The position numbers and the translations under genes were made by a program. DNA of 63,138 nucleotides, counting the filler, from Intoshia linei (lineage: Eukaryota; Animalia; Orthonectida): NCBI GenBank assembly GCA_001642005.1. It is 5 parts of 5 records of this genome, joined end to end, with 100 filler letters (N's around TTAATTAATTAA, not from the genome) between each part and the next. Parts side by side here need not be neighbours in the genome. Positions count along the whole stretch, not along the records: positions 21,078 to 35,262 come from LWCA01000976.1; 4 more parts are not named here. One strand, 5' to 3'. Below the pieces are notes generated by a model, which was not told the origin of the DNA, ran no database searches, and saw only the letters and a program-made list of their open reading frames with translations. This document shows positions 21,078 to 35,262 of the stretch, piece after piece; the stretch's first letter is position 1; each line of letters begins with the position of its first letter.

Positions 21078-21590
21078 CATGATAAGAGTTAATTTAGAAT
21101 AATATAAATATATTTAATGGCAAAATTTGGAGTTTGCACATAGTTTTGCGGTGCAGTTTATAATGATTAATCAATCGCTTATTTTTTGATTGGTGTGTCG
21201 CGAAAAATTTTGAATTTTTCGAAACCAAAAATGGTTGGAATGCACTGAGTTACAGCCTCGCATCCGTCAGTATTAGAAACTTAATAAATATATTTTTTAG
21301 GAAACTGATAATATGTTCCTGGACAGGATACAATCGAAAGTAAGTAATAAATACAGCATAGAGTTGGCTTAAGATTATAGGTGTAATGTTTATTGCTAAA
21401 TAAAACCAATACTGCATATTTCTAGATATCTATACAATATTTAGATATATATACATATATATAGATATTTACACAAACCACCATATTAAAATTTTGAGAG
21501 GAATGTCAAATATGTTAGTAATGGAATTGGGCAGATTTTTTTATTTATATTGCGGATTAGAGCAATCATGATATTAGGTTAAACAATTAC

Positions 21591-24500
21591 ATCAATGGTT
21601 TGTATATTTTTTCCTATTGCTACATCCCAAAATTTAATGGAATCATCATCAGCGATACTGCTTAGAACAAGTCCGGTATATTTAAATGTTAAACATCTTA
21701 TCCAAGAACCGTGTCCTTTTAAAATGTATAATATTGCATTTTTAGTTGGATTCCATAAAATTATGCATCTATCATTGCTTCCTGACGCCTAGTTAAAAAA
21801 CAATTATCAAATTGTATTGTAATGTAAATTAATGTAAGTAGACTCATTTATGCAGTCCATAAACATTAGTTAGACCTGCAGCGGTGGAGACGGGTGGTAA
21901 ATCTTTATATTTATTTTTTAGTGAATGGAATTCTGACATAAGAATATAATTTTGATAAACAAAAATATGATTATAAATATGATGACCTAAATTAATTAGG
22001 TCCAGTCTTCTTGAATGAAGTATTAATATTTCATTAACCAAACTTTCAACATCAAAATTATAGTCACAGTGGCAATTCATGAGGGCCAGTCCACATAACA
22101 AAAGGTCTCAAGTCACATGATCAATTGTTCATGTAATGACATGTAATGTTATGCGCCATCTATATTGTTTTAATAAATTAAAACCTTTTTCAATTATTTT
22201 ACAAAACATTAATTAAAATTTAGGGGTGCAACCAGAGCCGTCTTAAGCCACTTCGTGACCCTGGGCTAAGCAAAGGACCGGAGGCCCTTTAAAGTTTTGA
22301 GCGAAGCTATAAAAAAAATTTAGGGTCGATTTTTTAAAAATTAATATGAGAAAATTAAAGATTTCATACTTTCTTTTTTGAATAATCAGTTAATAGAAAA
22401 GTTTTAATGTTTAATATTATCATTTGAAACAGTTTTTATGTCAATATTATATGATAAAAATTGTAGAATATATTTTAAATTGAACATTTACCAGAACTTT
22501 GATTTTTTAAACTATTTTTTTTCTAGCTATTTGAATTCCCACACTTCCAACTTATAAAAATTCTGCCCAAAAATTACTATAGTGATATTTTCCCTTTTGA
22601 TGAATTAATCCTATACTTGTATAATAGTTAAATTTGCATCAAAAAATAATAATTATATAGTGATGAAACAGCAAATCAAAGTTTTAGGTTTTTTATATAT
22701 TTTTTAAAAAAACATAAAAATCATTTACGTTTTGTCGATTTATTCAAAAACTCCCTTAGATTATTATAATGATATAATTCATTCTTTAAATTTTGAAAAT
22801 TCTCATTCATATGATAGTAATTTTGTCTGGGTGCACGATAAAAAGTTGGAAATTGTCTATTAGTGTAATGGAAAAACAAAATATTGGTTATACTGATACA
22901 AAATACTTAACAAATTAGTACTGTTTGTACTAAATACAAATCATTCCAACTAGTAAACCGTACAATCGATAAAATGTAATTTAAAAATAACCAAAATGCC
23001 ATGTTTTGAAAAAGCAACGCAGTTTACTCTACCCTTGTGACCTTTTAATTTGGTTCCTTCTCCTATAGCAGTTATTTTTTCAAATTTCCAAAAGCGAACA
23101 TATAAATCCCAACAACCGGTAGCCTAAAATGTACTACATGTAGTATTAAAAATTAATTAATTAATTATAGAAGCAAACTTTTGATTAAATTTTATTAAGA
23201 ATATTAGATTTCGAAAGCTTATACAGTGTATAATATACACTGACCGCACCATTCTAAGTAATTTTTAACAGTATTCGATATTTAAAGTTAAAATTATATA
23301 ATTTCACTATATAATTAACCATTACCATTCGATTATATTCATTGTTGAATGCAATAGATTGCACTAAACTTTGATGACCATCGATTGTTTTAATGATTAT
23401 ACCTTCTTGCTAAACATTTTAATGAGAATTAATTTAAGAACATGAAAAAACCTTACATATAATATGATTATCGAAAATATACATCTAAACATTCAAAATT
23501 ACCCACAAATCCCACATAATCACTTTACGATCCCATGAACCAGAGAAAATATAATTGGCATCCTTACTAAACTTTATGCATTCCACTGACTTTGTGTGAC
23601 CTTAATAAATAAAAAATGTATGATGTATATCAAAGTTTCTCAAACTCGATCCAAATCCTAAGTTTCCCCATATCATTTAAAATTTCGTACAAGATTATTC
23701 TAAATTTTCGTAAATGACAATTTTTTTTTATGATTTAGTATGAATTAGATCGTAAGCAATAAAAGTTTGAAAAACTTGGCGTTTGATATACGATTAAAAG
23801 TATTTTTAAAACAATTGATACCGATTTATTATTGAATATTTATTAATAGTATAGCATTTATAATAATATTAGGGCCATGGAGAACCAGCAGTAGGCCTGG
23901 TCAGATGGAAATTGTAGGCCCACTATAAATTTTTTTTTAATTAACACTATAAAATTAAGACGTCTATACATTGTTTAGTCGTTCTTTGATTGCCTAAAAA
24001 TTAAAAATAACAGTTGCAAATTGCATTGGTCATCATAATTTTGACATACTTAAAAAATTTGCCAACATTACCTATTAATGAATTAAAATATTAGGCCCCT
24101 TATGATAATAGGCCCAGTACTAGTGTTGATAACCGGTTAATTTAATTCTATATTTGTTTAAAGAAATCAATGGTGAAGCCACATGTACTGCGTGTTCCAA
24201 AAAAATTAAATGTGGTGGTGGTTCTATCTCATCTTTATCATACCATTTAAAGGTTGTACATAATATCACTCGTGACAATAAAAATTCAAATCAACCAATC
24301 GTAGATAATTATTTAGCAAAAAGATTTATAGATGAAGATGTTTCGCTACTAGCTTGTAAAGATAGATTAAGTTTTAATGTTATAGCTAAGAGTTCATTCA
24401 TTCAAGAATCTTATAAAAAATATAATTATGATAATTTACCACCAAAGAGTCATTCTTTCGTAAAAAATATTACTGTGAGATTTTTTGTTGACAAAAAACA

Positions 24501-27500
24501 ACAATTACAAAAATATTTTAAATAACAAATTGAATTGGGCACTAGGTATTCCCTAACCCTAGATGAGTACACTTCCATTAAAAACAAATGCTACATACAA
24601 TAACCATGCAACGAATGTAAACATTAATGTTCATGAGAAAGCAAAAAATTGGTCATTCGGTCTTATGAAATTAAATGGATCAATTTAATGTGCTAAACTG
24701 ATTGAAATACTTTCCAAAAAATTAAAAGAATTCAATATTTGTCTACATAAACACATAATTGAATGTACAACAGCGTCAGTTATGGTTAAATTTCGAAAAA
24801 ATAATGAATCACTAAATCTGTATAGCACACATATATGTCACCCAATTTATTTAGCAATAAGTGATACACTATACACCTCAAATAATAATAATGATCTTTC
24901 GGATTCAGATGCTGAAAGTGAAAATATCGATGTGGAAGAACTTGACGCTTTCGAATATATTGAAAACATAACTAATCTTGAATTAAACGAAAACTATAAA
25001 AATATTATACATAAAGTAAGACCAATTAGTAAATTTCTAGTAAAATTTTTAGAAAATCCTCAATTAAAAACGAAAAATTGCAAGATTTCGTTGATGGCGA
25101 ATTTGGTAAAGAAATGAATCCATTAATCGACATTAAAATTAGATGAAATATTCTATTATTTATAGATTATTAATAATAATAATATTATTACCTATTATAA
25201 TTATTACCTATGATTATTATATATTACCTATGATAACACGGTTTATAAAACTAAATAATGGTATACATAGAGCTCTCAGAGTAATTGGATCAACGTATAC
25301 AATTAAAAAACAGAATTAACTACTTTACAACATTTTATAGATGTTATAAGTCCTATAGAAGTTGTTACAAAAAATATATGCTCTAAAAATGCTAATTTTT
25401 TTGATGCAGAATCATCTACAATTTCTACTTAAAAAACTTAAATTAATTAATACATCAATTTCATTAAAATTTTATGACTCTATTTTTAAACGATATACAT
25501 CACATAGAAGTATAAAAAAATATATATCATATCTACATGATTTTAAAAATATGAGGGACAGTATTTTTCCATTATTGCCTAAAAAAATAATAAGATCAAA
25601 TATAGAAATACAACTTAAAAGATTGAATATTGACGACAATTTTAGTGAAAAAAAAACAATTCCGTGAACCTCAAATAGATCACGATATTTTTAATATTGA
25701 TAATCAATCTCAATTTTTAAAAGAATACATGAATACCATGAATACAAACATCATACCTATCAATAATAACATCAGCACTGTATTAAAATGTTATGAAATT
25801 ACACAACTAAGAACTCAACCTTTAGAATGATTATATAGGTTTATATTGTCTATTCTAGCGACAAATGTGGAAGCAGAAAGAACGTTTTCATCAGTTGGTC
25901 TACTTCTAACTAAAATTAGATTTAGGCTTTCAGATGAAAATATTGATGCACTATGTTTCTTAAAACAATTTTTTAAAGATGTCTAATAAATTTTAACCGG
26001 TTAATTTTTTTCCGGTTATTTGTCACCCCTACCCAGTATATAGTACCCAGTATAGTAATATATAACCATTCAATTTTTATTTTAATCGAAATATTTGAAA
26101 AATATTGGTTGAATATATATTAAAAATTATTTTTCACCGGGATTGCGTAGATTTCAGAGGTTGAAATTTTATATTTATATCAACTGGAATAAGCTGTATC
26201 AGAATAATTTTTTTTTTAAATTTTCGGACCGTTAATTATTTTATATTTTTTGTTTTAATAAAATATTTCGGAAAAAAAATATATGAATACTAAAATTTTC
26301 TTTTACAGTGAAGTTGTCACTTATTCGGATTGAAATTTTTTTTGTGTGTTAATAGGATACAACTGTACCACCTGTAATTTTTTTAAATTTAAAATTATGA
26401 TAATGTTTATGATTTTAAAATCCGTATCAGCGTATATATTTTTTTAAATTCTCCAACTCGTTTGATTTTCAAAAGAAGGACACTTAGGGTTTTTGACCCG
26501 TAAGATGTAAGTTTGGGAGGTTGAATTTTTTTTGCGAACACCTCAGGAAAAAACTGTAATTGAAATGTTGACTTTATAAAATTCTAAGACGGGTAGTTAT
26601 TTAAATAAAGTGGAACACACACAAACAAAAACTTACTTATATAATTATATAAGTAAAAATTAATAATCTGAGATTATGTATTAATCTTCAATTATCAATA
26701 TGAGTCACTCATATAAATTACCTGTCAATGTCATGATACAATTCGCTTTTCTAAATTTCCATATTTTCAACAAGTTATCTTTAGCACCAGAAGCAAATAG
26801 TTTATTCTCATTTGATAAGCTTATACATCTAATTGGCCCTATATTAATTATAAATAATATTAATATAGTCACATTTGAGTTTACATACGAGTTAATTTGT
26901 AGAATTTTTTAGATAATTTACAAATCTATAACATGTAGTTGCGATATTTTTTAGCTACATGTTCTAATTTGATTTAAATAAATGTATACCTGAATGCATT
27001 GAGTGCTAAGCACCGAAAAAATTCGCAAATTTTTCAAAAAATGTGACACCTTAATGCACACTAGTGCGTACATACAGTGCCAAACCTACCATGCTCGAAG
27101 CCACCCGAAAATGAAAAATAGGCTTGAATTTTATTTAAATTTCGGCAAGACCAACCTAAGAGGAGTCTCACAGTACGGTAGTTTTGGCACTTCGTATACG
27201 GTCGCAAATTATGCAATGCACATCCGTTTTTAAGTAGTTGCACAATATTTTGTACCTGAGTCTCAATACTTTATATGTACAATGTACATCGAAATTACTA
27301 TACCTTATGAAAAATACCTAGTAACACCTTGACATAACATAACCTATATAAAATTCGGTATGGAGGTTCTGATAGTTATATTCAACGATGAGAGCAATGA
27401 TTATGTGTTTAAATACAGATATTAAGTTTGAATAAAATCGCTGCAATAACCTTTAACCTTTCGCTGTCTAGTAAAATAATGAAAAATTTTATTCTTTTAA

Positions 27501-27785
27501 AGTGAATATAATTTATATAATATAATTATACAGCGAAAGAGTTAATTAAGTATTCTTTATCGTCATAAAATAACCAGTATGTCCGTTTAATTTGACAATT
27601 AATTTGTTTTTTAAAACATTGTATATCCTTATTCTTTCATCGTCTGAACCAGTGATAAGTATTTCTAAGTCCTTAGAAAATTCAATGCAATTTATATCAT
27701 CTTTTTGTACGCCGTGTTGACTAATATTGGGGTAATGATATCTTGTATATATTAAACTTTTAACTTGTTGCATGTTGCTTTTCAT
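21591..27785 (-). CDS. WDR38: WD40-repeat protein, WDR38-like (exons 27575-27785, 26722-26838, 23502-23600, ~23327-23408, ~22992-23123, 21591-21788; last exon not found)
   Basis: The spliced translation ITGSDD..LNGHTGPIRC..FASG..GHTKSVE..SGSWDRKVIMWD..GHQSLVQS..ATGCWD..GHKG..GILASGS..LKGHGSWIR parallels WDR38 repeat by repeat, from recalled sequence. Confidence 0.78.
21878..22125 (-). mobile_element. hAT remnant (P52rIPK/ZMYM1-type C-terminus) in an intron
   Basis: The translation LCGLALMNCHCDYNFDVESLVNEILILHSRRLDL resembles the end of a hAT dimerisation domain. GC-rich terminus CCCGTCTCCACCGCTG. Confidence 0.6.
23870..24117 (+). mobile_element. hAT MITE (CAGGGCCGTGGAGAG family) interrupted by a larger hAT element
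   Basis: Colinear with the intact copy at 30188-30423 up to the insertion point. Confidence 0.7.
24121..26031 (+). mobile_element. Decayed hAT transposon (transposase pseudogene)
   Basis: BED finger CTACSKKIKCGGGSISSLSYHLKVVH, catalytic YSLTLDEYTS and dimerisation motif ATNVEAERTFSSVGLLLTKIRFRLSDENIDALCFLK, broken by stops and frameshifts. Imperfect TIRs TAGTGTTGATAACCGG / CCGGTTATTTGTCACCCCTA and TSD CCCAGTAC/CCCAGTAT. Confidence 0.9.
26070..26645 (-). mobile_element. Non-autonomous Helitron fragment
   Basis: Reverse-strand homology to 12015-12400 and direct homology to 55735-56380. Confidence 0.7.
26996..27269 (-). ncRNA. Putative intronic structured RNA of unknown family
   Basis: Nested helices include GUAUUGAG/CUCAAUGC, GGAUGUG/CACAUUU, GUGCCAAAACUACC/GGUAGGUUUGGCAC, GUGAGAC/GUCUUGC and AAGCC/GGCUU. 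Many G-U pairs form only on the minus strand. Single copy in this window. Confidence 0.55.
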
Positions 27786-28961
27786 TTAAATTAGCTTTTG
27801 TGGTTGACATTTAACTGTATATACAAATAGTGTCTATAAATTAAACGTTTCAGGTATAGTTGATTTGTATGTAGACAACAGTACTGAATATATAGACTAT
27901 TTTAAACATTTACAATTGTTAACATTGTAGATACTTTACATTGTATTTTATATCATAGTATCGAGGTGTGTACAATGAACACTGTTCATTGATTACATAT
28001 AAAATAATTATCTATAGCAGTATATTCTACAACTATATTACACTGCTAATTTAGTTAATTATAATGTATAACAATAAATATAATCAAATATAAAGCATCA
28101 TTTACAATTTTAGTAAATGATTGATTAATTGAGTTCAATTTACAGTATGGCCAATTAATAAAATTAACAAATGTAATATTTTAAATGTTTTTTTTGTTAA
28201 CGTGATAAATGCGTTTACCGGTAAACAGTAAACTCCTTTGTTTAAATATACTCCAATCTAATATATGTAAATGTTCAATATAGTGATGCAATTATATTTA
28301 ATTATCCTCTTATTTTATGTTACACAAATAATACGTATTGATGAAAGAAGCTGAACCTATTTAACAATTTTTTAGAATTACAATCAAAATTACTATTGGC
28401 TAATATCACGTTTTATAAAGATTACAAAGAAAAGAATGTTTTATTTCTTGGCATAAATTTTAATTACAATGGGATACAAACAATCAATCTCACTTTAATA
28501 AAAAATTTAAATTTAAATGATGTGTCTATTGAATTAAATGAAAAAAGTTATAAAAAATAAAAATTGAACAACAGGGTTAATTTAATTATATATTTCAGCG
28601 TTTCGTAAATTTTAACTACCATGGAACCATACATACCCGACAAACAATATTTTATATATTTGTATAAACTATGACCAATGACATTGTTAATAGTATATAA
28701 TTTAAATATCATCTTTTCCAAAATTAAGTTTCATATCATAACGTTATACGTTTAGATTACATATTATAATAATTATGACAAAAACGCTATCGTGTCGATA
28801 ACAAAAATCAAGTCTGCACTGCAAATTAAATAAAGTGAGAATGCTGTGAATGTCAATCTGTTATATGTAACTAAACTTAAAATATTATATATTTTGTAAC
28901 AAGATGTACTTTATATAATAACATTTAGAGAACTTTTAAATTTGATAATGTTTTATATCAA

Positions 28962-31491
28962 ATGACTTATAATAACTCAACAAATATTTATACGCAATAT
29001 TTAAATATAATAAAGATTCCAAAAATATCAAAAAAGACTGACCATATTAATAATAAGAATATAAAAAATAAAAAATTAAACTTCAAAAATGTGACTAAAT
29101 TAAAAAATTGTAAAACACTGGCATGTATTAAATGTAATATTAAAAACAATAATAAAACATTAAATAAACGACGAATTAAAAGAAATTCAAAATATGAATA
29201 TGGAAATGAAACGACAAATTATTATGTTGAAATAATCTTTTTACTAGATTACACAATATGGAATCAGTAATATTATTAATTCAAATTTTAAACCTACACT
29301 TCCAAGATCCAATTCTACTATGCAAGAACCCGATTAATACACTCATTTCATTACCTTCTATTTTTTATTATTTTTTTCACGAACTAAATTACAAACAATA
29401 TGATTTAAATTTTCATATAACTATAAAATAACATGATTTTTTTATGGGTAACTTTGTAATCAAGAATTTGGTTTCTTATCAGAAATACATCGTTAATTAT
29501 GTATGTATTTATGAATCCGCTCACGAATTGGCTCACAAGTAATATTTTGATACCTGTTAGTCCATCTCAAGAGTATAAACAATTCTCTAAGTATCCCTCA
29601 CATACGACTAGTTCTATTTCGTCCATAACTCCACCATTTTCATAAATTGTCACCTTCTATAATACATAATATTTCTAGAAATTAAAATGAATGTGAAAAT
29701 TAAATACAAGGTTATATCGATTCCTTCTTATAATATTAGTTTCTGATTTAATTTATCATTTTTTAAATTAAAAATATGAATTCGTTTGACTAAGTTGTCA
29801 AATGCAATCAACAGTTGCTTGTAGCAAACTGTAAATTAAATTATTTGAAGGAATTTTGAACTTATTTTTAGTTTGGGAGCTGATCATGATGGTGATAATA
29901 ATAATTGCAAAAGTTCAAGCAACTATATAATGACACCTATAGGTGGAACTGCAAAAGAAAAAAATTATAAAAATTCGTATAAATTTTCTTCTTGCAGCAT
30001 GAAAAGTATCAAAGAAACTTTAAATGGAGATTTAGATAGGTAGTTTACAAAATTTTAATTATTTGGTTAATATTTTATTTTTAATTGTATACAGTAAATT
30101 TTGTCTATAAGAAACTATTTTTAGTTGTTTTTATATAAAGAGTCGAACATTAATTTAGTGAATAATAAAAATTTTTGTACATTAGTGTAGGGCTGTGGAG
30201 AATCAGCAGTAGTCTCCGCCAAATGGAAATTGTAGGCCCTTATAAAAATTGTTTCAAAAATGGTACCTCTATAAATTACTGAATCGATCGTTCATTATAT
30301 AAAAATTTCGAAATTTTGGTATACTTAAGAAATTTTCCATTATCTATTAATACATTAAAAAGGTAGTCCCTCATGATTGTAGTCCCAGGCATATTGCCAT
30401 AGCCCACCCTCTCCACGGCATTGCATTAGTGAAAAAATTTACCAAACTATGGAAATATTGAAAACTGTTTTTATAGAGTGTTCTTATATACATATTTTAC
30501 TATAATAATTTTCTTATTTATTAGATCTATAACTGAATAATCTTTATTAATATAAAAGTAATATACATATATATTAGAAGTTAAATTAGTTTAATAGAGT
30601 TCGTTAAAATGCTGCATTCCTCTGACAGATTAAAAAATACATTGAACTTTTCTTATCAATATGTGAATTTCGATAAAAGTATCAATTTCTGATGTTTCAC
30701 TGTTTAATTAACTCGATATCCAATTATACTGCATAACTCACAATCACAATGAGAAAATTAGTATCTTTATTCATGTATCCTGTTGTAGCTAATTTATGAA
30801 ATTGTCATGATCAAAACTATTATATATTTGAATTCTACAAATACGATTCTACAATAACTACAAAAATTCCTTTAACACGGTTCTAAGCATAACTTTGGAC
30901 TGTATTTAGCAGATTCGAACCTACCGAAACAACCTAAACAATTGCGACTACGCAAGGTTCAACTACGTCTAGTCTTATTATCTCTACAACAGCTACAACG
31001 ACCTCAACTCCAGTTACAAATACATCAACTACGGCGACACCCACTACTCCTCCTCCAACTACAGTTCCTATTACAACAACTACAATGAGTACAACACGAA
31101 CACCAACAACAACTACAGCGACAATAACAACATCGACTATGACTCCTTCAATATCATCTACCACTGCGACAATTTTAACATCCCCGCCTACAATCTTTTG
31201 ATGGTAATCATTATATAATCAATGATATATGACTGATTTATCAATACTTAATATATTTTTTAGAAAATTGTTCGGACACATTCAGTGAATGTGGTGCCAT
31301 CAAAAACTTATGTAATACGAATAACTTTGGATTGGAAATGTTTGAAAATTGCAAATCTACATGTAATCAATGCCATTTAAGTAAATTTTTAAATAACCAT
31401 TAATATTTAAAATAAATTAGCATGCTATGAACGTGAAAGTGCAATTTTCCATGTCTATAAGTTGGGTACTTATGTATGGATACATTGCTAA
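28962..31491 (+). pseudogene. Reprolysin (M12B, ADAM/ADAMTS-like) metalloprotease with Thr-rich mucin stalk and ShK domain, probably decayed
   Basis: Furin site RRIKR, then YYVEIIFLLDY, the spliced zinc motif HELAHN-LGADHD, Met-turn YIMTP and FSSCS. Thr-rich tract at 30912-31200 and ShK-like CSDTFSECGAIKNLC..FENCKSTCNQC. Stops occur in 29330-29440 and the catalytic domain is too short. Confidence 0.72.
30188..30423 (+). mobile_element. hAT MITE (CAGGGCCGTGGAGAG family), intact
   Basis: TIRs TAGGGCTGTGGAGA / TCTCCACGGCATTG with a perfect 8-bp TSD CATTAGTG. Confidence 0.85.
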
Positions 31492-32095
31492 GAGGCTTTC
31501 AAAGATGGTCAATGCGTAAATCAAATTGTCAGTATATTAACAATAATGAGTTGGTAAAAAAAAATGGAAAAATACACCCTTATTTTTAAATAGGCTTTAG
31601 AAATCTTTATTAATGACATAATAGCAAACATGTTTAAAGTGAGAAAGACTAGAGCTAATACGATCGGCAAAACTTCATTCCATGAGGAAATCACGGTTTT
31701 AGGGTTAATTCGTTGTAAATGTTCCATCATTGATAATGTAGAGAATGTAACAATTTAAATAATCAAAAGCTTCAAATGTTTTGTTGATCTCTTTATGTGG
31801 AAACAGTGGTCACTGTCTATTCTATTATAAACGAATTATGAGAATGTGGCGCTACCATGTCAATTAATAATAACATTTTAACAAATTTCAATTTAATTAA
31901 ATCTACACATGTATTATAACTATTAATAATTGTAATTATATTTATTCACGCTGCAAAATTAAGCGCCATTAATGTCACTTATAAATGATAATTTATCAGT
32001 TACATTAGTTAATTATGTTTTCAATATAATCAAATTGGAATAATTAAAAATGTATTAAGATAAAATTCAAATTTATTAAAATTTCAACAGATATA

Positions 32096-33341
32096 TTAGT
32101 CATCTTTGAGCCATTTTGCTATCCAAGGAGCATAGTAAGTTATAATCAAATCAGCTCCTAATTGAAAATATTAAGATATTAAAATAATATATTTAATTTA
32201 AATTAAAATTAGAGGTATCATTAATGTTCACTAAACTTAAAAAATGTAGTTGTATCACGTAAAGTCGATTATATCATATATTATGTAGCCTCATCCTCGT
32301 GCCCGCGAGAAAATTGATATTTTTATGGAAAAATTTTCAATGTTACTATCCACTTTATTGTGATACAGACAAACCTGTTTATTTTAAAATTTGATTTTGT
32401 TTAAAATAAAAATATTTTTGACGAATTTGTGACACTAATAAATGGAATTTACATGTACAAAAATATATATTGTTTATGTTAAATGATTTTTAAATATATT
32501 TGGATCGGGGTCATATCATTATAGATAAAATATTTGATGCGATAAGTTATTACCTTGATTTAGAAACAAAAATGTACATTTTAAATTAAATTTAAAATTT
32601 AGTTGTAAATTTGATACAAAACAAAATAAAATCAGGGTTATTTTAAAATAAAGTTTTTTAAAAAGTTTTATGTGTACTAGCTTGACTGTTATGTATTTCG
32701 TACAAACAGCATCGTAGCTCTGCCGTGGGCGAACTTTTTTAATTCTATCAAAAAAATAAATTAAATAATATAATCTTAATTAAAAATGCTGACTCACTTT
32801 TATCAATCCTTTAAACGTTAAATTAGTGTTTCTAAACTTGAATTTCACATTATATTTGAAAATAAATAATAGTATTTTTCTTGCCACTTTAACTGAAGGC
32901 TTCAATTTCTGAGAATAACATTAGCGATAAAACATCACTCTCGAAAAAATATATTAAAAATTTGGTTTTGACAATTCAAGGACAGTGGTTCTCAAAGTGG
33001 TACTTTTGTCCACATGAAAAATATTGAAATCTAATAAAATGAAGATAATCTTTTTTTAACAATAAATTAAAATTAGATTAAATTATTATTTATTATCGAT
33101 GTATTAACTCTTAATAAACTATTAACTCAGTATCCATCGCACGAGTAAGTGTATCATAATATCAATAAATAATGTAATCGAAAAGCCCATGTGATTGATA
33201 ATAAACAAATAATATACCAGCTCGTTTTATAGATTCCATAACTTCAAAGACTGCAGACTGTAGGTTGCTTTCATCAAAACATTTATTCAACATCATACAT
33301 TCACCTGAAACATGATAAGCGGCCATAGGATAATCCGGAAA
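32096..33341 (-). CDS. ALAD: Delta-aminolevulinic acid dehydratase (porphobilinogen synthase), last two exons only (33218-33341, 32096-32157)
   Basis: The spliced translation FPDYPMAAYHVSGECMML...AVFEVMESIKRAG-ADLIITYYAPWIAKWLKDD* matches the metazoan ALAD C-terminus. Confidence 0.85.
32677..32850 (-). mobile_element. Helitron 3' end fragment
   Basis: ACTAG-CTTGACTGTTATGTATTTCGTACAAACAG is the reverse complement of the family hairpin plus CTAG end. Confidence 0.7.
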
Positions 33342-35262
33342 CTAAATAGAAATGCAATATATTAATCAATTAATTAAAATAAAACTACGAAAATGAACCT
33401 TACATAATAGTCTCATACAATAGATATTTTTCCACGCGTAACTGGGAAATTCCATGTGATACGACATATTGTAGTAACCTGACCAATGGTCAGTGACCAT
33501 CTTCAATTTTAATAAAAATTTGCAAAAATAATAATTATAGCACTTAACACAATGCGTGTTACATATATGTATATTTTATTAACGATTTAATTTCCCAAAT
33601 TCTGGCAATTTACATTATTTAAATTGTATTCAATGCATAATATGCATTGCATATAATTTAGCAAAAATCCAAAAAATTGAACTAGAAACAAATTTAAAAA
33701 AATAAACTGTATAACTAAACACGCAGAACAATATTATAAAGCGGTACCACGTTTAAAAGCTCAAACACCAATTTCCGTTAAAATAAAGTTCAGTTTTAAT
33801 TTTTTCATAATATTTTTAAAAGGATATTTAAAATAACAAATGCAACTTGAATAGATAGCGTTAAATGTTTTTGATTGCGAATTAGTTTTTCTATTTTAAA
33901 AATTACACACTTTTAGTGCTAATTGCCTTAATTGTTTGATGGGTGTGACACCCTATTGTATATACATGACCGCTACGTTATTATTTAAAAAATCTCACTT
34001 TTATCTCACGATAAATACAATTTAATAAAAATACCATTTCAAATCCTCATGGAAAAATCGACATTTACCGATATTTTTTTGAAAAATTCACTTAAATTAA
34101 GTCTTCATTAAATCCCAAAATAAAAAATCCACTTTTACCAAATCTTAATGAGAAAGGACCTTTATTTTTTTCATAAATGTTTTATATTTCATTTTTCCTT
34201 TGAGGTACAAAAAAATAAATATATTGAAATATGGGTGCGTACACTATTTGAAACGGGAACCACTGGACTAACACTTAGTGATTATTTATCTATTTAACAT
34301 TCAAATTGCAGTAATTCGGAGTTATCTATTTCTGATTCATTGAGACATTTCATCATAAAAATTTTTTATGATACTATCGGATTTATTAATACACTCTTGT
34401 ATAGAATTACTACTCATATGTTTAAATGCAAATTTGAGACGATTTGAAACATCAGACAAATTGTCTGAGACAATTTAGTGTTAAATGATACATTCATTTA
34501 TTGACAATAAACAAAAATATAAATTTATTTTGTATCATTAGTATTGTGTACGTAGGGGTTTTTATTTTAAAATACCTAAACTAGGAAAGCAGGTATACCA
34601 ATCAAGTATACATGTACAATAGAGTGTTAACTTTTACTACTTTTATCAATTAAAAAAAAAGTATATTTCGGTATCTGGGTTTTTTGCTATGCTGAACAAA
34701 ATGGTAAAAAAATTTTTTAATTTCGTTAAGAATAACCCTCGCGCATTTGTCATTTATCAACAATTTTCCAAAAAATAAAAATAAAGTTAATTTCGGTAAA
34801 AATTAGTAAGTTGCCATCACTATTCGTGTACCTGTAGCCCTGGAAGTGCGGGACTTCTATTATTTTCATGTGGTTACAATATTTACATACATTTCTTCGA
34901 TTAATAATACATGATTTTATATACTATTCTTCGATTTGTGCTGTCAAAACTCTTATTATATTCCAAAAGATATAGACAATAAATATTGCTGTTTGATATA
35001 CCAATCATCATGTTAGGTATGTATAGATTCTGTTCGGATAAATGACATAAATCGAACTCTTAGAAAATATCACAAAATATCATGACATTAGTATGCAAAT
35101 GAAAAAATTGAGCTTTATAAAACATTTGACAAAATATTTTATCTGAAATCTAAACAAATAGAAATTTATGTTATTGCTACAATGTAAGAAGAGATGATGA
35201 TGAAAGCCAAGATGTGAGTATATCAGTCAGTATAGTCATAAAATTAAAAAAACAGTAAAAAT

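Follow-up and report, generated by a model that had tools for sequence, protein, structure and literature searches.

Does a GC-rich, strongly folding block of 274 nt in the first intron of a WD40-repeat gene of Intoshia linei encode a structured non-coding RNA, or is it an inverted repeat of DNA that is merely carried along in the pre-mRNA? The locus lies in a window of 63,138 nt (five parts of assembly GCA_001642005.1 joined end to end), in which positions 21078 to 35262 come from record LWCA01000976.1. All coordinates given here are those of the window; the piece from this record, about 14 kb long, has a GC content of about 26%. A preliminary description had presented the block as an unclassified, multi-branched RNA in the sense of its host gene. 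Our analysis favours a decayed foldback or MITE-like inverted-repeat insertion that is passively transcribed within the pre-mRNA, a reading to which we assign a probability of roughly 0.55.

The WD40-repeat gene is located on the minus strand of the piece, and its first two exons frame the block as follows:

27576-27785, minus strand: exon 1 of the host WD40 gene, an open reading frame with its ATG at 27785 and a Pfam WD40 match of 28.9 bits.
26842-27575, minus strand: intron 1 of the host gene, about 734 nt, with donor and acceptor both read; it contains the 274-nt block.
26727-26841, minus strand: exon 2 of the host gene, with a Pfam WD40 match of 24.8 bits (E 3e-05).

The donor (ACTG/GT, at about 27576/27575) follows an exon 1 ending in ...NGHT-G, and the acceptor (AG/GG, at about 26842/26841) leads into an exon 2 that continues G-PIRC.... 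The junction ...GHT-G-PIRC..., from which the intronic position of the block had been deduced, is therefore confirmed, and both exons match Pfam WD40; the score of exon 2 lies under the Pfam WD40 cut-off of 27 bits and is supported by matches to several beta-propeller families. More WD40 exons of the same gene were found at about 23600, 23410, 23122 and 21788. Of the earlier label "WDR38-like" the general part holds, with WD40 or beta-propeller Pfam matches for all exon pieces (each searched singly), and the specific part does not, none of these matches being particular to WDR38. Exon 1 had no relative in a protein collection searched within a length window that leaves out full-length proteins, and its 446 pattern matches among metagenome contigs yielded no confirmed hit; the search of a representative library with exon 6 was dominated by giant multi-repeat WD40 proteins and returned no orthologue. 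Also close by are an ShK-domain exon, a reprolysin-like exon and an ALAD exon.

Within this intron the block stands out by its composition. Its GC fraction of 0.394 (0.417 in the inner 192 nt) compares with 0.252 and 0.195 in the intron flanks, in agreement with the enrichment first noted, and the boundaries of the GC island are exactly those of a palindrome whose parts are the following:

26996-27269, minus strand: whole inverted-repeat block, 274 nt, delimited by fold and arm alignment; GC 0.394.
About 27269-27136, minus strand: 5' arm of the block, from the arm alignment.
About 27135-26996, minus strand: 3' arm of the block, from the arm alignment.
27034-27225, minus strand: inner rod of 192 nt, from GGAUGUG to CACAU and then U6; the most GC-rich part (GC 0.417).
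27172-27200, no strand assigned: arm of the core inverted repeat nearer the minus-strand 5' end, including the 14-nt near-perfect half (13 of 14).
27067-27095, no strand assigned: partner arm of the core inverted repeat, from repeat finding.
27096-27171, minus strand: apical region in the minimum free energy (MFE) and centroid structures; it holds a T5 and a T4 run.

When the reverse complement of the last 140 nt was aligned to the first 134 nt, 90 columns were identical, 33 were mismatched and 28 positions were gaps, so that the arms agree at 90/123 aligned columns (about 73%). The two core arms, 29 nt each and 76% complementary, are separated by 76 nt, and the block is closed by an 8-bp helix that includes one U-G pair (7/8 of the outermost nucleotides match). 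The helices listed in the preliminary description do exist: the MFE structure contains the closing helix, the pairing of GGAUGUG with CACAU, the long arm with its 13-of-14 helix and apical hairpins. Their arrangement as a multi-branched RNA did not stand, as both the MFE and the centroid structures are mostly one long imperfect hairpin, or inverted repeat, with a loose AT-rich apex. The apical region consists of a 7-bp hairpin (two G-U pairs) followed by an AT-rich stretch with small alternative hairpins, and the separate 5' and 3' hairpins proposed earlier are local alternatives to the long-range pairing. Over its full 274 nt the sequence can be aligned with its own reverse complement, so that the supposedly multi-branched fold amounts to a single palindrome whose apex is loose.

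The block is single-copy locally, as had been stated: in the 14-kb piece only its own reverse complement resembles it (self-inverse blastn, E 0.002). Its two-arm DNA pattern found no match in metagenome or viral contigs, blastn against plasmids gave none, and a string search of papers with sequence strings from the block was equally empty. Open frames over the block on both strands matched no Pfam family at E up to 10, nor did a search of the protein collection return any relatives. A coding exon or a transposase remnant was considered as a reading of the block and was ruled out by the lack of a Pfam match. A scan for bacterial-type promoters and terminators returned nothing relevant.

The anatomy described above is compatible with a non-autonomous inverted-repeat DNA, of foldback or MITE-like type, that would have been inserted into intron 1 of the WD40 gene. 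Its two halves would formerly have been near-identical inverted copies that have decayed to the present identity of about 73% of aligned columns. Transcription of the block would occur only as part of the host pre-mRNA, in which it would fold into a long imperfect hairpin, to be removed and degraded with the intron; it would have no dedicated RNA function. While we infer both the mobile-element origin and the absence of function, several properties of the piece point in this direction. Host introns without insertions measure about 94 and 200 nt, and the long host introns 2 and 5 carry insertions or GC-rich transposon-like blocks; by analogy, intron 1 may owe its 734 nt to the block that it holds. 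Intron 2 contains a decayed hAT transposase on the plus strand, in which Pfam matches mark a BED finger (24154-24522) and a hAT dimerisation domain (25846-25983); the hAT open frame had no relatives in the protein collection. Two transposon-like GC-rich blocks, 23870-24130 and 30188-30420, are 76% identical over their first 67 nt and both start with a hAT-like TAGGGCYRTGGAGAA string, and a third GC-rich non-coding block lies at 22225-22320. The remaining GC-rich islands of non-coding DNA in the piece thus look transposon-like.

A target-site duplication was searched for as a direct repeat abutting either candidate boundary of the block, and none was seen; it may have decayed. We know of no transposon-superfamily terminal motif that matches the ends of the block. 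Long direct repeats flanking the core, as a possible trace of retroposition or duplication, were rejected, as their score of 45 was equalled or exceeded in 37 of 101 real controls. Also counting against the mobile-element reading, no second copy is present in the 14-kb piece, the host-sense strand gives the more stable fold (one-sided 11/250 in the test described below), and the block is the best composition-corrected window of the piece; the last two observations fit a role at the RNA level.

These two observations also speak for a structured non-coding RNA embedded in the intron and belonging to an undescribed class. It would be about 190-274 nt long, host-sense, single-copy and conserved, and would be freed from the WD40 pre-mRNA to act in trans. 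Such an RNA would be released from the spliced intron and owe its protection to the closed rod that it forms or to proteins bound to it. We consider this unlikely, though it fares best among the alternatives. The fold itself is not in question. On the minus strand the block reaches -77.8 kcal/mol (z -3.39), a value that none of 200 dinucleotide shuffles equalled, and it outfolds the plus strand (-61.4 kcal/mol, z -1.91), both as the preliminary description would have it. The inner rod alone (27225-27034) folds with -58.6 kcal/mol and the same z of -3.39, its long arm being retained in the centroid. In addition, a GC island of 0.39-0.42 within an intron of 0.20-0.25 and a single copy in the 14-kb piece are what an RNA gene of this kind might present, and there is a precedent in the Caenorhabditis telomerase RNA, which is located in the nmy-2 intron (PMC12921731).

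The positive case for an RNA gene had rested on the strand asymmetry of wobble positions, said to comprise over a dozen G-U against about one A-C and to be incompatible with a decayed DNA palindrome. The count was reproduced on the minus-strand MFE structure (14 G-U and 1 A-C in symmetric loops); a strand-neutral alignment of the arms gave 9 G-T against 3 A-C. The 14:1 ratio is biased because the MFE structure is itself chosen to favour G-U pairs. The plus-strand MFE structure has 8 G-U pairs of its own, and only 30 pairs are common to the two structures. We then applied a swap test, in which the non-identical columns were exchanged between the arms at random and the sequence was refolded, so that Watson-Crick pairs are kept and G-U turns into A-C; exchanging all columns yields exactly the plus strand. 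The null distribution had a mean MFE of -72.6 kcal/mol (sd 5.6), and the observed -77.8 was attained in 72 of 400 trials. The plus strand, at -61.4, lies on the weak side of this null, with 9 of 400 trials as weak. A difference between the strands as large as the observed 16.4 kcal/mol arose in 23 of 250 trials when its sign was disregarded, and in 11 of 250 with the same sign as observed. About 11 of these 16.4 kcal/mol are already present between the shuffled means (-63.5 for minus, -52.7 for plus) and are a matter of composition, G+T amounting to 55-57% on the minus strand against 52% in the piece. The strand bias is thus weak: at 9:3, marginal in the swap test and not significant two-sided, it does not serve as a mark that excludes a decayed DNA palindrome, which can show such a bias, and the asymmetry is suggestive at best. 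The strand-neutral tests accordingly weaken the earlier argument for an RNA gene. What they leave in its favour are the 9:3 ratio, the one-sided strand difference, and the z-scores of the two strands; against it, a plain palindrome explains the fold. A transposon-type palindrome, which the preliminary description had itself named as a refuting alternative, is at least as likely as an RNA gene.

No known RNA family fits the block, in accordance with its initial description as unclassified. Rfam 15 was empty at gathering score over the whole piece, and no match to the block was supported at E up to 10. With lax filters at this threshold, only two chance-level matches of about 17 bits fell within the block, both on the plus strand and far under their gathering scores (SNORD42, E 3.6; ceN23-1, E 1.9); a chance-level snoRNA match on the minus strand lies outside it, at 26683-26743. 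The Rfam models of RNase P and RNase MRP RNA, which represent the P4 core (CR-I/CR-V), returned nothing at gathering score, nor when E was relaxed to 10. C/D boxes were absent as reported, the minus strand of 26960-27300 having neither RUGAUGA nor CUGA. The minus strand carries 11 ANANNA and 6 ACA strings of the H/ACA type, strings that are frequent in AT-rich sequence; the block folds as one long hairpin in place of the hairpin-hinge-hairpin of H/ACA RNAs, and no H/ACA family of Rfam matched. No Sm site pattern was found on the minus strand of 26960-27300 (an A-U6 there is followed by C), and no snRNA family of Rfam matched. A tRNA- or SINE-like head was also considered and rejected: ARAGORN predicted no tRNA-like gene, and likenesses to A and B boxes, judged by eye, were poor. 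With no C or D box, Sm site or Rfam match on the minus strand, there is no known route by which an intron fragment would be stabilised; any stable RNA would have to be cut from a Pol II intron without the usual protective box motifs.

The fold might also reflect chance or base composition: among the many windows open to selection, a patch richer in GC could simply happen to fold best. To place the block among its neighbours, the MFE of 308 windows of 274 nt, all taken from the piece, was regressed on their GC and G+T content. The minus strand of the block had the largest negative residual of all (-20.5, or 3.1 sd), closely followed by -17.7, -17.1 and -17.0. The fold is beyond chance, yet with so small a margin over the runners-up it does not stand in a class of its own. 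Judged simply as an inverted repeat of DNA, the block has a score of 55, where the piece averages 34.6 (sd 8.7); 21 of 696 windows, mostly AT-rich palindromes, match or exceed it. Locally it is unexceptional in this respect; its distinction is thermodynamic and due to its GC content. The runner-up of -17.7 and the 21 windows speak for a compositional effect, but the failure of any of the 200 dinucleotide shuffles to fold as well, an inverted-repeat alignment that spans all 274 nt with the 13-of-14 core included, and the coincidence of GC island and palindrome make it distinctly unlikely that nothing more than chance is at work.

A cis-acting structure in the pre-mRNA is a doubtful proposition, with slim odds. 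Here the rod would bring the 5' splice site effectively closer to the branch point of the 734-nt intron, or provide a double-stranded substrate for editing or dicing. The host-sense strand is the one that folds better, the block is centrally placed in the intron, with 306 nt separating it from the donor and 154 nt from the acceptor, and it offers about 25 bp of duplex broken by small loops. However, other host introns, at 94-200 nt, need no such device, so that the hairpin would merely offset its own insertion, and an apex of about 85 nt is unlike that of animal miRNA precursors.

An independent Pol III small RNA gene, which would start at GGAUGUG (27225) and end in the U-run behind CACAU (about 27034), is highly improbable: the inner rod begins with G, has a 7-bp terminal stem, a U6 end and a z of -3.39, and is preceded by an AT-rich stretch (-26 to -19) and, further out, by TATAAA (-51 to -46), but such "promoter" strings are expected by chance at 75% A+T, the minus strand has a T5 (27118-27114) and a T4 (27111-27108) in the middle of the rod that would halt the enzyme after about 110 nt, T4 runs occur inside on the plus strand too, the full 274-nt form contains two T6 runs (at 27041 and 27021) before its 3' end, and neither 7SK, Y, vault or other Pol III family matches nor GAUC were found.

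As an old insertion of the foldback or MITE type, the reading that we favour, the block would in itself be ordinary, and its interest would lie in a caution, namely that GC-richer palindromes in the introns of a very AT-rich genome yield convincing hand-drawn RNA folds and a seeming G-U bias. If it were instead truly single-copy, conserved with covariation and discretely expressed, it would represent a new intron-hosted structured RNA without boxes of the snoRNA type. The RNA reading, if true, would be worth pursuing, considering that the intron-hosted telomerase RNA of nematodes was long overlooked.

The suggested resemblance to 7SK and RNase P/MRP RNA broke down in each feature that could be tested (Rfam, GAUC, T runs). 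With 7SK the block shares a GGAUGUG paired to CACAU and a 3' end in a U-run. However, it has no covariance-model match to the Rfam 7SK and Arthropod_7SK families even at E 10, and GATC is absent from both strands of 26960-27300, as the preliminary description had recognised for the GAUC motifs of 7SK. It is moreover half the usual length, is interrupted by the T5/T4 runs and has no separate 5' and 3' hairpin domains. Y and vault RNAs, like 7SK, recall the block by a terminal stem that joins the 5' and 3' ends and by a U tail, a likeness that belongs to the Pol III reading.

A further comparison is with telomerase RNA. The Caenorhabditis RNA sits in the nmy-2 intron and, though functional, went unrecognised for years (PMC12921731); short insect telomerase RNAs have a median length of 187 nt, a figure that is cited in the same paper. 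The block resembles these as an unannotated, structured RNA candidate of about 190 nt on the host-sense strand of an intron in a protein-coding gene. A telomerase template was taken to require one full telomere repeat and 2 nt or more of annealing sequence, and 8 nt was the minimum template match for the nematode candidates (PMC12921731). The best template matches in the block are of 7 nt, AAGCCTA on the minus strand (for TTAGGC) and AACCTAA on the plus strand (for TTAGG), which is about chance; a telomerase template was thus rejected. Unlike the Caenorhabditis RNA, the block therefore falls short of 8 nt in its template match, and no H/ACA domain is evident in it.

With pri-miRNAs and hpRNAs the block has in common an imperfect duplex, about 25 bp long and interrupted by small internal loops, that forms part of a longer stem, as well as an intronic, host-sense location. 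Its branched apex of about 85 nt is far above the terminal loop of animal precursors, and it does not have the form of an animal miRNA precursor, which is one hairpin of some 60-80 nt closed by a small terminal loop. Its stem is far shorter than those of known hpRNAs.

The remaining comparison is with MITEs and foldback elements. The block differs from these in having no recognised target-site duplication and no second copy in the 14 kb, and in an arm identity of only about 73%. It resembles them in its length within 200-300 bp, in inverted halves that extend over its full length and in its lack of coding capacity; it is intronic and, like the transposon-like blocks of the same piece, richer in GC than its AT-rich surroundings, and the intron next to its own bears the hAT remnant.

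The composition-corrected fold of the 274-nt block, the GC-richer imperfect inverted repeat in intron 1 of the WD40 gene, is almost equalled by that of an AT-rich region upstream of the gene start (27903-28176, both strands), for which the residuals of fold energy regressed on composition in 308 windows of 274 nt were -17.7 and -16.7 on the two strands, against -20.5 for the block. A plain AT-rich palindrome would be expected to fold in this way on both strands.

Intron 1 also holds, 30-70 nt downstream of the block, a small near-perfect hairpin (26927-26966) with 12-nt arms, 92% complementary, and a 16-nt loop. An 18-nt string in the 5' part of the block (27234-27251) recurs with 78% identity on the loop side of this hairpin, a likeness that is probably due to chance in AT-rich DNA.

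The other features annotated around the block comprise transposon-related sequences and neighbouring protein-coding exons:

22225-22320, +, GC-rich block of ~100 nt in the AT-rich DNA of WD40 gene intron 5
23870-24130, +, first of two GC-rich blocks, immediately 5' to the hAT open frames
24150-25990, +, decayed hAT-family transposase in WD40 gene intron 2, with several broken frames
24154-24522, +, its BED zinc finger domain
25846-25983, +, its hAT C-terminal dimerisation domain
29849-31400, +, exons of a secreted-protein gene
29849-30040, +, its reprolysin-like (M12B) piece
30188-30420, +, second of the two GC-rich blocks
30938-31198, +, Thr/Ser/Pro-rich mucin-like stretch of the secreted-protein gene
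31233-31400, +, its ShK domain, a hint of cnidarian or nematode-like origin
33165-33341, -, delta-aminolevulinic acid dehydratase (ALAD) gene, one exon (Pfam PF00490, E 2.9e-07)

The GC-rich block in intron 5, which is adjoined by an 85-aa open frame (21844-22101, minus strand), looks transposon-like, of no assigned class. The paired GC-rich blocks share their start, with 76% identity over the first 67 nt, and both open with the hAT-like string TAGGGCYRTGGAGAA. The first may be the end of the hAT element in intron 2; the second resembles a short, non-autonomous derivative.
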